Origin: Mytilus edulis
Taxonomy: Eukaryota
Length of the DNA stretch: 64,000 nucleotides
Assembly: GCF_963676685.1 (NCBI RefSeq)
Contig: NC_092353.1
Location: 60,078,001-60,142,000, forward strand
Reading direction: 5' to 3'
The notes under the pieces were generated by a model. That model saw only the letters and a list, made by a program, of their open reading frames with translations, made no database searches and had not been told where the DNA came from. Position 1 is the stretch's first letter; each line of letters opens with the position of its first letter. Shown here piece by piece: positions 3,524 through 15,695 of the stretch. Position numbers and translations under genes: made by a program.

Positions 3524-3832
3524 AGATCAAAATAGTTAAAAAGCCAAACAAATACAAAGTTGAAGAGCATTGAGGACCCAAAATTCCAAAAAGTTGTGCC
3601 AAATACGGCTAAGGTAATCTACTCCTGGGGTAAGAAAATCCTTAGTTTTTCGAATAATTCAAAGTTTTGTAAACAGAAAATTTATAAAAATGACCATATA
3701 ATTGATATTCATGTCAACACAGAAGTGCTGACTACTGGGCTGGTGATACCCTCGGGGACGAAACGTCCACCAGCAGTGGCATCGACCCAGTGGTGTAAAT
3801 AGTTATCAAAAGTACCAGGATTATAATTTTAT

Positions 3833-3878: not shown

Positions 3879-4187
3879 AGATCAAAATAGTTAAAAAGCC
3901 AAACAAATACAAAGTTGAAGAGCATTGAGGACCCAAAATTCCAAAAAGTTGTGCCAAATACGGCTAAGGTAATCTACTCCTGGGGTAAGAAAATCCTTAG
4001 TTTTTCGAATAATTCAAAGTTTTGTAAACAGAAAATTTATAAAAATGACCATATAATTGATATTCATGTCAACACAGAAGTGCTGACTACTGGGCTGGTG
4101 ATACCCTCGGGGACGAAACGTCCACCAGCAGTGGCATCGACCCAGTGGTGTAAATAGTTATCAAAAGTACCAGGATTATAATTTTAT

Positions 4188-6661: not shown

Positions 6662-8015
6662 AACTTATTTCAAAAGTGTATGAATACTAGTAACCTCTTA
6701 AATTATTCCATGAGAGTTACAAAACGTACCATGATAACAGATGTATAATTTTCATTCAGACTTCAAAATAATCATCAGTGGTGCTCCAAGCAAAATGATT
6801 TGACAGCACAACCAAGTACGAATTTGAAGGGAACCAAAAGTACCTCAACGTGCCAAATATCGATAAATGTCATCTATGCTTGAGGTAGAAATCAGAAGTG
6901 TTGTGTGCAATAAGTATGATTATTATTATCTATCAACTGTCAAAGTTATAAACTAAATAAATGTGAAATGTGGACCAAGACGATTTCCACGCTTGCATAT
7001 AACGTTTAAAAGAGACATAACTCAAGAACGCTAAAAGTGACACCAATTTGTATTGATTCTAAGTTTGGTGATATTTAGCATTATATACAAGTTTCATAAT
7101 ATTTGGTTCTGGCAAACTAATTTAGAGAACAGAAACATATCTCGGAATGGACCTACAGACGGACCAGGGTAAATCGTAATGACCCTCTGATACGGCAGGG
7201 GCATACAAAATGAATATCTACCAATAATCTCGTAGATCGTATGCCATATGTATATAATTTGCCACTTACATCCCTGCAATTTGTTTGACCTCTGATGCAA
7301 AACGCTAAAAGGACACGAATAATCTCCAAGACAATGGGCATACAAACCCTATCTTATTTACAGGGATAAAACTGTAAAATGGACTTTGGTGGTTGTAATA
7401 TTTCTGAACTTTAGAATTATTTATGAAACTCATATTTCCCCAAAAATATAGTATACCCTGGCATTCTATTCTGTAGGGTATGTTGTACTTTTTGTAAAGT
7501 GTAATTTAGAGTTAATGATATAAGTTTAGGTAATGCAAGAGTCTATTTGGTAATGTTGCAAGTCGAGAGCTATTTTATCTGCTGCATAACTTTTTTAGAT
7601 GATGGTTTTGCGTTGATTTCAAGGACTTTAACGCTTCAACAATGAATTTCGAGTTTCCTTTACCACAACATTAATGTATTTTCTCTTACATCTAACACTT
7701 TACTTTGAAAATACAAAAGTTGAAATTGTAATGGTTTCATCTGTTTGTCCTATAGTAATTGCTAAAAAAATTTCAAGTAAAAACAAACCAAGAGGGTGCA
7801 TTCGACATACACAACTCAAGATTTTGCTGAATAGGACATTTGTTCGACCCTCATTCGTACATCTTTATGTAATGAGCAAAGAACAACATCTTATAAAATA
7901 TTTTAATTATTCTTTTTTTTTATATATTTTTTATCTTCTTGGAATTGTCTGAATTATGTTTGTCGATAATGGCTTATGAAATTAACATAAAATAGTAGAA
8001 TCATTTCACGGAATG

Positions 8016-11000
8016 TCAAATTTTATCCAAAAAATTCGTTAAAGCTGGTATAACTAGGTTCATTCCTTTTCTCTTCCTGACTTCACCCACTACAGTTGTT
8101 GCTCTTGATTCTGTTTGGGAATCTAGCGGTTCTCCAGGTAAATATTGCCAATGATCAAACACACACTGTGGGAAAGCTTGTCCTCCTGTCTGGCCTCGAA
8201 GATCTTCTGTGAAACCTAGAATATATTTGTAAACAGTAAATATTTGTTTAAACTATGGTCTTCGTAATTTGTTTGGTTTATTGTTTTTCTCCCCGATTTA
8301 ACTAGATATAAAATGTGTAATGAATTGGGATTGCAATCTGGTGAATGTTGGAAACTAAGGTCTTTTGAGGAACTTTACTGTTGTATTTCACAAAACAGTG
8401 TATTGGATTCCATTTTTATAATTTTTCGTATCATTTTGGGAAAAAACATATATTTAAGAAATATTATACAAAACCAGGGCCAATATTGAAATTATATATG
8501 CATAAGACAAGACTTCGGATATTTGAATATGAAGCATATAATGGACTTTGAATAACTATATTATTATTCTTACCAAATGATTCGTTAACTGGTAGATAAG
8601 CTTTTATTTGATGTAAGGGAACACCTTCCTGTTGAACTGCATCAATAACATGTCCTCGTCTCTTCGAAAGTACATTGTAGACTCCTCCCATTTCTGTTGA
8701 GGGAACCTGTATTAAGAGGAAAAGCTTAGATATAACTAAAGTTGTATAGTAGATAATATGATGTATAAAATTTATTATGTTGTCAGGTATGTAAAAAACT
8801 ATCATTATAATGCAACGAATGCAAATAAGGACCGGCTAAATAGGACTGCTTAAATTGTCACTATTGCCTGAAACCTTATCACATCTAAATTACTAGTACG
8901 AATTTAAATAAAGTAATTATTGAAGTGCACTCAAATCCAATTGTACATTTGAAATTAAACAAAAACATTAAAGAAGGCAGAGGAGAATAGAGAAAGGAAA
9001 TTCAACTAACCTGGATTTCGACGAGGTACACAGGTTCCATAATTCTTGGTTTGGCTGTTAGCATTGATGCAATCATAGCTCTTCTTACAGCTGGCATAAA
9101 CTGACCACCCCCTCTATGACTTGGGTCACCATGGATCTTCATGTCATGTATATCGAAACGGACACCACGTAAACTCTCTTCACATAAAATGCCCTGAAAA
9201 TTAATAGTATCACAAGTTAACAAACTTTTCGTGCTGGTTAACATTTGTCAATTTCCTTGAAATTTTAACCAAAGGTATGGCATTTTTAAGACTTAAGTTA
9301 ATGCAAACAATTATTTGTCCATATTTTCTGTTAAAGAGGTTAACAAATGTCTATATATTATTTTTAGAAAATATTTTATATTAGTGATATATTATAATTC
9401 GTCTTATTTATAACTTCAGTTCTTCATTCATAACTTAACTGCCATCACTCACAATGGGGGGGGGGGGGCTGGGGTATGGTACGGAAACACTTTTGAATAG
9501 AATTAATAAATGTTTACTAAGCAGACGATTGTGGTTCTCTTTTAATCATAATAAAAATATATGAACTAAATTACTAACCTCCCCAGACGCCCACTGGAAG
9601 CCTGCTACTATAACGTCCTTGATGTCATGAAGATTCTGGACTCCTTTGGTGCAGTCTACCAGCATATTAGGACCAGAATTGGATGGTCCAAAACACCAGA
9701 TTTTCTTGGCCTGCATTGGATCAAAGTCATACTTGTCGACCAGATACCTTGTTCTTTCTTTAACATCTTGTGTGGCTGTTACTTTGCCCTGTAATCATAA
9801 ATATTAAACATGATTAAGACTTTGACCGGCTATGATGATATTTAATATACTTCATTATAAGTCCTTTAAAATTATGCAAGATAATAAATACTACTACTAG
9901 GAAAGATGTGATTTTGGTTTATTAATTTATGACAAAATCCTTCAAAAAAATGGCCCTTTCATTGCCATTATTTATCTCCAGCGAAGTATTAACTGGGCAA
10001 CACACTAATGTGGAGAAAAGCTAACCCCACCGTCACTCCAAAAATTAACAGCTGGCCTAAGGGTGTGAAATTGTTTTATATATGTTCATTGCTCACATCT
10101 GAATTAAATTTAACTATTGCACAATAATACGTTATCAAATAAACACTTACACTTTCAATATCAATAACGAGACCATCAGGTAGAGGTGATGCTGTCATGT
10201 ATATCCTGTTGAGTTTGTTTGCTGTCTTTGCCAGACATATCTGTTCAGATGTTGTGCTTACTGTCTCTCTGTAAGTGACTACAGGTTGAGATACCTATAT
10301 TCAGAAAACAATATGTTATTTAATATATATATAACCAATAGTACATGTAGAAATCACGATCTTAACTGAATGGAAATTAATGTACACTATTGTAAATATG
10401 TGGCCTGAAATTTCAAAATCGTATTTTTCGTTTTATTTTCGGTAATGAATGAGACCATGGCTGTTAAGAGATTATCGGAATTAATAGTTAACAACAGTAA
10501 CTTGTTGCAAAAGATTATATAGCAAGCATAAAATGCAATAACTACCTTTAGTGGAACACATGCATGTTCAGTTTCAAGATCTTTCAGACATATTTCCAGG
10601 TGTAATTCTCCAGCTCCAGATACAATGTGTTGTCCACCCTCCAGACCACACTGGACCAAAGGGTCAGACTTGGCAAGTCGCTTCATGCCTTCTACAAGTT
10701 TAGGTAAATCTGCTGCATTTTTAACCTCTACTGCTACTCTTACGACTGGACTAACTGAAAACTTCATTACCTGTTGAAACAATTTATTTTATAAAAAGAG
10801 TGTTAAAACTCTGTAACCGTTCTTTGATGGTATTAGCTGTGGACGGTTTTTTTTTTGGTATTATCTGTTACTGTTCTAATAAGTATTAACTGTTGCAGTT
10901 CGTAAAAACAGTTTTGTTGTGATATACTAGAGTAATCCCAATCCAATGTTATTCCACAACAAAAACATGGGGTCAACTTACAAAACGGACACTTAACATG

Positions 11001-14000
11001 CTTAATTTGGTATCAAAGTTTGCAAAATGTGAAATGCAAGATTATCGTTTTATTTCAGTTAATATATCGCAGAGAATTTTCCAACTTTATATTAAAATAT
11101 GAGTACTGCAATAACTAAAACTTTTAACCCAACTTCCAAATTTAAATTGTGAGGATTTGAATTACTTATTATATTCGTATCATACCTTCATATTGTGGGC
11201 ATGCTCATAGGTTGATATGGTTCCTGATCGTAGAAGGAATTTATCAATGCCAGACAGACCGACAACATTACCACAAGGTACGTCATGGATACCACCTGAG
11301 ACACCGAAACCCATCATAATCACGGTGCTGAAAAATAAAATAAAAATATATAAAAATAAATACTGTAGGTTGTTATCAGGGAACCAACTATTGCCCAAAA
11401 TTTCGTCCCGTTAATGGTTCCTTTTAAAGCTCACTTTACTCTTCGATATGGGTTTATTCAAATTGTTAACTTGCGACCGTATTCATCTGTTTTGTTAAAT
11501 AATGTTTCAATCTTCGTGCAAATAATAATTTGGAGAGTCACTTATTTGATTAAAGCCTGGTTTTGGAACATTGAACTCCGTTGTTTTACCTAGTGAGTAC
11601 CTAGTGAGTTTGATTGTCCATAAAAAAAAATTCAGGAAAAATCAAAAAAGACCTCATGACTGAGCAACTAGAACATCACACAAACCTGGTGTGAAATAAG
11701 ATTTATTTGCTCAACTAAAAAACTTAGCTCTGATGATTGAAGTAAATCTATCCAGACAGTGCTTCAAATTAGAAATCAAACTTGTGTTTCATTTGATTTG
11801 TAAAATTATAAAACCATTACCTTGGTATCTTCTTGACATACAGATCCCGTGTTGTGCCAGGTGTGTAGTCTGGGCCCATGATTCGTACCATTTGACCTGT
11901 ACTAACTGTGCCAGAGAAAACTCTACCAAAAGCATAAAAGCGTCCTTTGTTCAATGCTGGTACCATCTTCGAAATATACAACATCAAAGGTCCTTCGGGA
12001 TCACATGTTTTCATTGCTAAAATAGAATTTTGACATTGCCGTAAGAGAAGATGATTCAAAGCCCTTATAAGTTGTTTTTTTCTTTCTAAATAAAACAAAA
12101 GAGTTAACGTTGCAATGCCTCGGGTTGAGAACACAAAATAAAAACATCATTTATCTATTTTTAAATGCGATTTTGAATTATTATAGTATTACACTATCTG
12201 TTTTGAAATTGAGTACATATATGGTTGACCAAGAAACACTGTACCTACCTACTGCTGCTTCGTCGTCTTGTGGGCCTTCATATAACAATTCTGTTCGGTA
12301 CCTTTGGGCAGTTATTGGAGAAGGCAAATGAACTACGAACATTTCCAACAAAGCATCATCAACAGGCAGCCATTTCTTCATGACGGTTCTCATTAGGGTC
12401 TTGCCTTCGGTTTCTTTTTCCTCTGTTGATAATTTAACACCTATTTTGTCTACCAGTGTTAACAACTCCGCTTTATCCTGAGCTTTTGTCGAATGAAGAA
12501 CCTATAAATAAATACAAATATAAACGTATTGTCACGTTAAAGAAAAATGATGACATATTTTAAAATTTTTCAACAATGTACATTTAAATGAATTCGAAGA
12601 TGTTCAATGAAAATATGATCACCCTGTTGAGAATATAAATCAGGGCCAATTGGCTGAGTTCTCCAATATTACACATCTTTCATGCATGGTACATAATTAT
12701 AACTTAATAACTTCACTTGATAGTGTCCTGGTGTCCTCGAGTACAATTTAAACTTAGCGTCGAATCTAAGGAACTTTGATGTAGCAGATTCAGAAATTTT
12801 CATAAGGAGGCGCTAGGGGGTGGGGGTCCTTATTTATAGGAAGCCGCTCCAGTCATGCTTTTGGGATTCCCTGAAATAATCAACGAAATGTTTCAAACAA
12901 AAGATGGCCCGAGATCCCTGTTCCCTTAAATCCGCCTCTGCGTATTTCTGGTGTTTAAATTAATATTAAGAATAATAAATTCACACAGTTTTGCTTACCT
13001 TGTATAAAGGTTCCACAACAAACTTGTTAAAACCGCGGACACAATTTTCCTCTTGCGTTTTGTGCCATTTTTTCGTCTCTGGGTTGTAAAAATTATTTCC
13101 CCATAACTTCGCCAACATCTTGTCTTCACTGACACCAAACTTTTCAGCGTACATTTTTGCAAACCGTCGGAGGGTGAAACCCCAACGGTGCAAACCAGAT
13201 CCAAAAGCAACATTACATAGTGTTGGATCGACCTATAACAAGAATTAAACAATTTAAAAGACGAGTATAACACGGATTGATTGATTGATTGAGCAAAGTG
13301 ACTGTTTTTGACTGATTGATGTGACTTATTCATTAATACGAATCATTTTGTTTTTTTCATTATTAAAAAAAAGGTTATCAGAAAGAAAACAAAAACTTCT
13401 AAGACTCCAAGATGTCAAAAAACAACGCGCGCTTTTTCCCTTGTTTCAGTCATTTAAATTTATTTTAAATAAGTACATGTTTATGAATTATTATCATTAT
13501 TTACCATGATGTCTCCCATAGCGTCATCTGAGTATGTGGCCACCAAAACATTAAATCTCTCGACAACGCTCCTTAAACTTTGATAAAGTTCCTCTGGCTG
13601 CAACTGTGTTTCAAATACACATCTGTCTATCTTGTTAATCATCAAAACTGGTTTGATTCGCTCGCCTAAAGCTTGCCTCAACACTGTCTCCGTCTGCACA
13701 CAGACACCTAAAAGTACAAAATGTATTAAATGTTTGAATGTTGTTTACTTAACGTCCAGTGGCAAATGTTTCAAGTATTATTAAGGAACTCGTATATAAA
13801 ATTTTACGAAGTGACAAACAGATTTTCTAATAGACATGTTGGAAATGAATTCTGCGTTTATTCTTAACATTCAGTGTCTAATATCAGAGTTACAGTAAAA
13901 ACCACCAGTGACAACTATTAGAGGTAAGTAAACAGTACTTTATCGTTAAAATGTTACAATTTTTTGTAATAATAGGAAGTTAAATCAATTATCGGAGCAT

Positions 14001-15695
14001 ATTGTGAACTCACCACTAACACTGTCTACTACTACCAGTGCCCCGTCAGCTACTCTCAACGCCGCCGTCACTTCAGAGGAGAAATCCACGTGACCAGGAG
14101 AATCAATCAAATTGACGATGTATTCGTGAGACTCCTCCTTCTGGTGACTGGCGGGGAGGATCTTTGGATCGACTTCGTACAGTAAAGATACAGCACTGAA
14201 AATTGAAAAAAAGTTACCAGTTATTTATAAGAATAAATTGGTACAGAAATTCGGGGAGAGTGAAGGTGGAAATAACATTTCCAAAACGTTCAATTAACAA
14301 TAGGTTTATGATTGTTTTTGCATAAATGCTTTTTGCATTTCCCCTAGCTTCAAACCAATACATTTCAACATCTTTGACCTCTTTAAATTTAAGACTGATC
14401 CTTTTTCACAATCCCGAATCATCCCCCTCCCCCCTAAAAAAAAATGAAAAGAAAAGATATAAGAAATTATATTTATAAAAAAACAGCAACAACCAAACAC
14501 ACACATTTTGTAGAACATACGTTATTAATAACAATATAACATAATTCAGTATTCATTTTCAACCAGTGGCTGTGTCTGTTGATTTAGACAATCCCCCCTT
14601 TTTCGTCCGGTAAAAGTATTCTAATATGTTTTAAAATTGTAAAAAAACAAGACTCAACCATTTAACATGCATAGGCTTTTAGAATCCCGTAATAAAGATA
14701 GTGACTTATAGCTGTTACAGTAGCTATTTTGTTATTTTCGTAATTTTATATATATATCTTCAGTCTAAGAAAAAAAATATTTGCTAGACAGCTTTTTTTT
14801 CTTCGTCTCTCGATATATAAATATCAGGGGCGGATACAGACATTTTAAAAATAGGGTTCCCAGTCTAGGAAAAAAGTGGGTTCAAACCATTTATCCCCAT
14901 TCAAACGCATTGTTCGTTTAAAAAAAGGGGGTTCCAATCCCCAGACCCCCCTTTTGAATCCTCCACTGGGTATGTAAACTAACAACTTACGTCGATTTGA
15001 TTGTAATTCCCTTCTCCTGTTCATCTTTCCTGGTATCCATGGCACACTTGTCCCCTGCCTGGTGGGCTGCAATAAAGCCCGCTCGGGCAAGGAGGGAATC
15101 AGTGAGAGTGGTCTTGCCATGGTCAACATGGGCAATGACTGCCATGTTGCGGACATTGTTTGGGCAGTCCATGGCCCCTCTTAATTGTTCTATGGTGAAG
15201 TTTACCTGTAAAAGGGCGAAGTGTTGCATTTCAAGTATATATATTAAACTAATTTGACATTAACTTTTCAAATTTGCTTAATGTTAAAGTTCAAAATTTT
15301 AATATTAAAGTTAAAGGATATTTCCTATTCTGTAAATTTGAAATTGAGAAAGAATTTTCTGTAATGAAAGCTTCTTAGAAATTAATTTAAACGACTTACG
15401 GTATTATAGATTGAAATTAAAAATTGAAAAAAAAAAAAAAAAAAAGCAAAAACAAAATTGTTCCATCCTAAGTAAAGCCCGATATCCCTACCTTTTTCTG
15501 TTCTTGAGACCTACTTTCTTATATACTTCGTTATTTTCTTTATTGAATAAATCATTAACAATCAGTGTTGAAAAAATAAATGTATTTATCTTTGAAATCA
15601 TTAAACTGTTGTTTTTTAATTCAATTATTGCATCTTGAAATATTTATGCTATTGAAAAATCTATCATTCAATTTAAAAGTATATTCTCTTACCAT
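8016..15695 (-). CDS. EEF2: Eukaryotic translation elongation factor 2, divergent paralog (840 aa, 14 coding exons)
   Basis: Exons (minus): 15693-15695 (ATG only), 14991-15205, 14014-14195, 13505-13707, 12999-13232, 12249-12501, 11821-12016, 11186-11327, 10546-10770, 10151-10294, 9579-9788, 9011-9193, 8574-8706, 8016-8215. All introns are GT-AG with consistent phases; total 2523 nt, no internal stop. Motifs: [96 protein letters not shown]. Confidence 0.96.
14825..14968. mobile_element. Short hAT-like MITE in eEF2 intron 2
   Basis: Ends CAGGGGCGGATAC...GAATCCTCCACTG with G/C tracts; decayed relatives at ~12781-12940 and ~16355-16501. Confidence 0.55.

Follow-up and report, generated by a model that had tools for sequence, protein, structure and literature searches.

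Few animal proteins are as conserved as eukaryotic elongation factor 2 (eEF2), in which the diphthamide loop is regarded as invariant across eukaryotes. Toxins imitate the way in which the ribosome holds this loop, which is therefore not free to change. Toxin-resistant eEF2 variants are known among yeast tip mutants and from the Chinese hamster ovary (CHO) variant G717R. Yeast eEF2 mutants at H694, D696, I698, and H699, in the tip of domain IV, were reportedly described by Ortiz et al. in 2006, and Zhang et al. are said to have published an alanine scan of the diphthamide-containing loop in 2008. Here we describe an eEF2 paralog encoded in a 64,000-nucleotide stretch of Mytilus edulis DNA (contig NC_092353.1; hereafter, the window), whose diphthamide loop lies on the minus strand at positions 9089-9139. 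This paralog is likewise substituted at the equivalent of Ile698. However, the yeast mutants are laboratory point mutants with growth defects, whereas the change in the paralog is natural, is combined with a Pro at position -2 relative to the target His and with changes in other loops, and is a family trait.

The eukaryotic cytoplasmic EF2 family has been described as consisting of eEF2, Ria1, and Snu114 only, with no such eEF2 subfamily (Atkinson 2015, PMC4342817), and we found no description of an animal eEF2 paralog of this kind in the searchable literature. Snu114/EFTUD2 and Ria1/EFL1 belong to the same superfamily and have a related domain IV, but the exon that carries the loop scored 55 bits against Snu114 and 88 bits against eEF2 when it was compared with solved chains by phmmer. 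Given these lower scores, we rejected Snu114 or EFL1 as the identity of the gene. The archaeal aEF-2p (Narrowe et al. 2018, PMC6143161) is also a second EF-2 that exists beside a canonical one and has noncanonical tip loops in domain IV. In aEF-2p, however, both loops, including the His, are unconserved and the genomes have no dph genes, whereas in the mussel the anchors of the loop, with the His, persist in the paralog and the genome has Dph1/Dph2; by its sequence, it is no member of the aEF-2p family. A naturally altered diphthamide loop is also found in the eEF2 of parabasalids (PMC6143161). There, the altered protein is the sole eEF2, carries a Gly-to-Asn change after the His-Arg pair, and occurs without dph genes, whereas the mussel paralog is changed before the His, and both the modification pathway and a canonical copy have been kept.

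Compared with canonical eEF2 (human, 6Z6M; yeast, 1N0U; and the mussel's own copy on contig C4), the paralog has in common the five domains, the GTPase motifs, HxDxxHRG with its target His, RGGGQ, and the C-terminus. It differs in its overall sequence (∼61% identity), in the diphthamide loop (Ala-Ile to Pro-Ser), in a second tip loop (SPNKHN to TANKLN), in a third tip loop, at Thr56 (now Met), in some intron positions, and in an expression that is not constitutive. We propose, with a probability that we put at roughly 45%, that the loop is part of a functional second eEF2, namely, a putative specialized translocase with a rebuilt decoding tip.

The paralog and its decoding tip

The loop of the canonical eEF2 encoded on contig C4 and those of the solved human and yeast proteins read TLHADAIHRGGGQIIPT. 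The corresponding motif of the paralog is H-G-D-P-S-H-R-G, which satisfies the HxDxxHRG definition (PMC6143161) and does not fit the canonical eukaryotic H[A/T]DAIHRGGGQII. The paralog has all of the loop residues H, D, H, R, G, and Q, and beyond the Gln the canonical II-P-T has become FM-P-A. The minus strand encodes the loop, and translation of 9086-9145 on the plus strand gives no meaningful sequence. The original prediction had proposed that an Ala and an Ile preceding a retained target His were replaced by Pro and Ser; this was confirmed by the codons themselves (Table 1), by the alignment with solved structures, and by the mussel's own canonical copy. In addition, an RNA-like contig from what is probably the window's own species spans 9008-9192 without a single difference, and an open reading frame (ORF) from a public contig (P0001) contains the identical loop exon, which provides independent confirmation.

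The gene that carries this loop is on the minus strand and comprises 14 exons, from a putative ATG at 15695-15693 to the stop codon at 8016-8018. The exon lengths add up to a coding sequence of 2,523 nucleotides, or 841 codons, with an 840-codon open frame devoid of internal stops, and all 13 introns have GT..AG ends. A retrocopy was rejected, since the gene contains these introns. We ran the searches exon by exon, and the Pfam matches together covered all five eEF2 domains (GTP_EFTU, domain II, EFG_III, EFG_IV, and EFG_C). PF00009 scored 64.5 and 33.1 bits, PF14492 scored 49.9 bits, PF03764 scored 44.1 and 35.7 bits, and PF00679 scored 25.1 and 20.1 bits in two separate exons; the score of PF03144 (30.0 bits) was just below the cut-off. 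The GTPase motifs G1, G3, and G4 are present in exons 2, 3, and 4, respectively.

The genome contains two eEF2 genes, the paralog and the canonical gene on contig C4, plus one distant match that we take to be Snu114. Exon-wise, the paralog is identical to its own canonical eEF2 at 496 of 808 positions (61%). The exon structures of the two genes also differ (comparison with L005-L007 on contig C4): the counterpart of paralog exon 6, like that of exon 9, is a pair of exons in the canonical gene, and the boundary between paralog exons 9 and 10 falls within canonical exon sequence. Since the intron positions are not the same, introns were gained or lost after the duplication, and the combination of 61% identity with several differing intron positions indicates that the duplication is old.

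In raw identity to canonical eEF2, the loop (9/17) is similar to the protein as a whole. The distribution of changes over sites that are invariant in canonical eEF2 was uneven within exon 12, beyond what chance would give: 7 of 16 such sites were changed in the loop stretch and 1 of 16 in the remainder of the exon (Fisher P = 0.019). The expectation that the gene is a true eEF2 paralog was borne out: the frame is intact and the gene is expressed. The changes are concentrated at normally invariant sites of the loop.

The remodeling extends beyond the diphthamide loop. In the second tip loop, the paralog has TANKLN where canonical eEF2 has SPNKHN (within SKSPNKHNRL), so the Lys is kept and the Pro and the His are replaced by Ala and Leu, respectively. 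This Lys contacts the tRNA and is positioned by the Pro/His pair of SP(H/N)KHN (PMC6143161). The third tip loop (canonical VQYLNEIKDS) is changed at 4 of 10 positions at which the canonical panel shows no variation. One of these changes puts Asp in place of the Glu that presumably pairs with the diphthamide-loop Arg, the Glu having been placed by counting; a Glu of the third tip loop has been described as forming a salt bridge with that Arg (PMC6143161). Finally, Thr56, the site phosphorylated by eEF2 kinase, is Met in the paralog (15038-15040, minus strand), which reads DKCAMDTR where the canonical protein reads ETRFTDTR. The genome contains several genes with an alpha-kinase domain, among which eEF2K was not singled out. 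Changes in all three tip loops and at Thr56 look like the coordinated remodeling of a putative specialized translocase.

Variant loops in other assemblies

A word search with the loop exon, a profile word search, and an exhaustive profile search recovered ORFs of exon size from numerous assemblies, among which 119 canonical-type and 19 variant-type loop exons (H-x-D-[P/R]-x-H) remained once duplicates had been removed. Position -2 is Ala in 117 of the 119 canonical exons; in the variants, it is Pro (14 exons), Arg (4 exons), or Ser (1 exon). Position -1 is Ile in all canonical exons except one (118/119) and was found as Met (6 exons), Ala (5), Ser (3), Pro (2), Asn (1), Arg (1), and Val (1) in the variants. 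The target His is present in every canonical exon and in 17 of the 19 variants, the other two having Cys. Among the variants, position -1 is the second most variable of 51 columns and position -4 is the sixth, there is no variation at the first His, the Asp, the Gln, or the Pro, and an Arg follows the target position in 17 of 19.

One further fragment, beyond the 19 variants, has Gln in place of the target His. The exon ORFs P0203, P0207, P0215, and P0218, from other assemblies, contain HSDPACRK, HSDPAQRK, or HQDPACRK, with Lys in place of the first Gly. Family members that lack the target His cannot carry diphthamide, and the occurrence of Cys or Gln in some of them therefore suggests that the family functions without a strict need for diphthamide.

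As the variant class is defined by its loop, we tested it on the 33 columns outside the loop. On a tree built from these columns, the variant label required 5 changes, compared to 18.1 for shuffled labels (0 of 500 shuffles were as low). The nearest rows to the window sequence on the same columns were all variants, and a tree with all variants as one clade had the best likelihood found (p-AU of 0.57). These results are consistent with a single old origin of the variant family, for which 33 columns are no proof. Judged on these exons, our comparisons show that the paralog belongs to a multigenome family with the remodeled loop as its hallmark. The exhaustive representative search yielded no full-length relatives of the paralog, nearly all matches being exon-sized fragments. 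A word search with the exon of the second tip loop gave no match, which is uninformative as this exon is short, and a protein-cluster search returned generic EFG_IV clusters only.

Expression, diphthamide, and the role of the paralog

We evaluated expression in sequencing runs that were only guessed to be RNA, with rough depths and with coded tissues and conditions. In 14 small sets of RNA-like contigs from seven studies, about one-third of the sampled words of window positions 8000-13999 were present, which is roughly the exonic share. Four runs were aligned to the stretch, namely, the contig sets X4, X5, and X6 and the raw RNA-seq run X21. Exons 4 to 14 were joined at the predicted sites in contigs of all three sets, which come from three organisms (B, C, and D) and three studies. 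The depth of the paralog contigs was ∼150 to 180 in X4, 1,300 to 2,700 in X5, and 120 to 135 in X6, and the canonical eEF2 contig of X6 had a depth of 2,805. In contrast, no paralog reads were found in the portion of X21 that was read (organism A, ∼6%), despite 346 canonical eEF2 reads that touch a conserved 33-nucleotide part. The spliced contigs in three sets and the absence of reads in X21 indicate that expression of the paralog is real but not constitutive, and the silence of X21 in the presence of canonical reads that it depends on condition or tissue.

About 2,800 raw reads of X21 match a ∼40-nucleotide element at 13734-13773, within the intron that separates exons 3 and 4, and the flanks are unrelated on either side. 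This element is a short, highly expressed repeat or a fragment of a mobile element and does not reflect expression of the paralog gene. In eastern oyster larvae, an "elongation factor 2-like" gene (LOC111103490) was ∼4.5-fold higher under experimental acidification (PMC9498863, Table 1).

The comparison between congeners showed differences of 0 to 3% in exons and of 5 to 6%, plus indels, in introns. The loop exon had no difference in the window's probable own species and two in organism C. The four best-supported exonic differences between congeners were all synonymous and at third positions. The paralog thus evolves under constraint.

Matches to PF01866 (Dph1/Dph2) were found at two loci of the genome, on contigs C1 and C6, and this search revealed no extra Dph1/Dph2 copy that might serve the paralog. 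Residues around and neighboring the target His are critical for diphthamide formation (PMC2830473). The original prediction stated that substitutions at this Ile reportedly impair diphthamide formation and give toxin resistance, which was verified in part. Yeast I698A, like H694N and P580H, triggers -1 frameshifting (PMC6193676), and the title of Ortiz 2006, as cited in PMC6193676, names diphtheria toxin resistance; abolition of diphthamide by substitution of Ile698 is a putative effect. The paralog, in which Ser has replaced Ile at -1 and Pro has replaced Ala at -2, is substituted at or next to the target His, as toxin-resistant eEF2 variants are. On the grounds of this literature, of the missing extra Dph1/Dph2 copy, and of the family members without the target His, the balance favors a paralog with reduced or absent diphthamide and hence a reduced sensitivity to toxins.

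Because it has kept its GTPase motifs and those tip residues in contact with the decoding center, the proposed specialized paralog would still translocate, but with an altered tip surface. This surface is what Dph1/Dph2 and ADP-ribosylating toxins would read, so the paralog is probably diphthamidated poorly or not at all and less sensitive to toxins. Together with the change of Thr56 to Met, poor diphthamidation would yield an eEF2 that neither of the known off-switches reaches and that may be used in particular tissues or conditions. Toxin insensitivity would then be a consequence of the design, without being shown as its cause. The fixed anchors, the new Pro at -2, the variable surface, and the changes in three loops and in the kinase site look like those of a specialized, ribosome-active paralog, unlike a decaying copy. 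The retention of the H-x-D-x-x-H-R-G anchors, although loss of the His would be the simplest escape, speaks against toxin evasion as the sole purpose, and the changes in the other two tip loops and at Thr56 point to a wider functional shift.

Several observations weigh against this proposal. The chief counterargument is that the paralog preserves the entire HxDxxHRG motif. As the x positions of this motif differ between archaea and eukaryotes (PMC6143161), Pro-Ser is not necessarily an obstacle to Dph1/Dph2. The conservation of the His in 17 of 19 family members argues that this residue still matters, possibly because it is modified. Furthermore, the loop statistics within the variant class are partly circular, since that class is defined by the loop, and orthology rests on 33 columns because the family members are exon-sized fragments. 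In a small panel covering the C-terminal half, the excess of changes at invariant sites was marginal (6/15 in the loop versus 21/117; P = 0.056). The predicted divergence of the loop beyond the rest of the protein therefore held at canonically invariant sites, in the exon and marginally in the C-terminal half, but not in raw identity. With the H, D, H, R, G, and Q in place, Dph1 and Dph2 both present, and x positions that vary among diphthamidated EF-2s (PMC6143161), the paralog might still receive diphthamide and act as a tissue- or stage-specific translocase that tunes decoding, frame, or speed and stays sensitive to toxins. The Pro found at -2 in 14 of 19 members, which resembles a new constraint and not decay, would fit such a role. 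We nevertheless regard it as possible but doubtful, since Ala-Ile is essentially invariant in eukaryotes, the neighbors of the His are critical for its modification (PMC2830473), and some family members have lost the target His altogether.

Selection for toxin defense would make the paralog a resistant back-up translocase against cholix- or exotoxin A-like toxins of filtered bacteria, with the hypervariable sites as products of an arms race. The high variability of -1 and -4 between fixed anchors, the non-constitutive expression, and the effect on diphtheria toxin resistance reported for yeast tip mutants (title of Ortiz 2006, via PMC6193676) agree with this, as do the inhibition of protein synthesis by cholix toxin in crustaceans and mammals (PMC4549722) and the recovery of chxA-positive Vibrio cholerae from marketed bivalves (PMC13762650). 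As a selective cause, however, defense has ecological plausibility only. Moreover, relaxed constraint would explain the variable positions just as well, the His is missing from no more than a minority of members, and evasion requires neither the change at Thr56 nor those in the other two tip loops, so that we find defense an unlikely driver. The original prediction had also considered the paralog as a substrate decoy, an idea that we dropped as mechanistically weak: toxins are catalytic, and a decoy can therefore neither absorb nor neutralize them. A broader version, in which an old "unswitchable" eEF2 family would serve mussel-like animals as translation insurance beyond the reach of eEF2 kinase as well as of the ADP-ribosylating toxins that aquatic bacteria make, with the flanking hypervariability as the trace of an arms race, is a quite speculative extension to which we give little credence. 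It is also improbable that the paralog has ceased to translocate and has another role on the ribosome, such as hibernation, rescue, or back-translocation, as proposed for archaeal aEF-2p. Changes in three tip loops, one of which affects the Pro/His pair that reportedly positions the Lys contacting the tRNA (PMC6143161), and an identity to canonical eEF2 of only 61% could be read this way, but the paralog, unlike aEF-2p, still has its loop anchors, the second-loop Lys, the G motifs, and the conserved C-terminus. Lastly, fast evolution relative to canonical eEF2 and silence in one RNA run might suggest a decaying duplicate or an assembly artifact whose loop changes are neutral drift. This is very improbable and largely refuted by the open frame of 840 codons and the intact splice sites, and it conflicts with spliced transcripts at considerable depth in three organisms, with visible congener differences that are synonymous only, with related copies in many assemblies, and with an independent contig that contains the identical exon.

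An expressed paralog family that rewrites the loop and keeps its anchors amounts to a natural experiment on the residues needed by Dph1/Dph2 and by toxins. The family can also reveal how diphthamide and the tip help to maintain the reading frame and whether elongation in animals follows a second route that is free of the control exerted by Thr56 phosphorylation and ADP-ribosylation.

Feature coordinates

Table 1. Positions, in the window, of the exons and loop codons of the eEF2 paralog
Feature	Positions	Strand	Description	Basis
Start codon	15693-15695	-	Putative ATG, donor GTAAGA directly after; exon 1 would end at the ATG	Inference
Exon 2	14991-15205	-	P-loop AHVDHGKT (G1)	Boundaries from splice signals only
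Exon 3	14014-14195	-	G domain, DSPGH motif (G3)	Boundaries from splice signals and frame only
Exon 4	13505-13707	-	G domain, NKID motif (G4)	Spliced contigs and Pfam
Exon 5	12999-13232	-		Spliced contigs
Exon 6	12249-12501	-		Spliced contigs
Exon 7	11821-12016	-	Domain II	Spliced contigs and Pfam
Exon 8	11186-11327	-		Spliced contigs
Exon 9	10546-10770	-	Domain III	Spliced contigs and Pfam
Exon 10	10151-10294	-	Second tip loop at 10199-10234	Spliced contigs
Exon 11	9579-9788	-	Domain IV; third tip loop at 9612-9641	Spliced contigs
Exon 12	9011-9193	-	End of domain IV; 183 nucleotides, 61 codons; holds the diphthamide loop	GT..AG on both sides; both joints in spliced contigs; PF03764, 35.7 bits
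Pro codon CCA	9122-9124	-	Replaces Ala713 (human)/Ala697 (yeast)	
Ser codon AGT	9119-9121	-	Replaces Ile714 (human)/Ile698 (yeast)	
Target His codon CAT	9116-9118	-	Retained; aligns with His715 (human)/His699 (yeast)	phmmer against solved structures
Exon 13	8574-8706	-	Domain V	Spliced contigs and Pfam
Exon 14	8016-8215	-	Conserved C-terminus; stop codon TGA at 8016-8018	Spliced contigs

Elsewhere in the window, two identical ORFs of 80 codons, at 3560-3802 and 3915-4157, lie 355 bp apart and form a tandem repeat.

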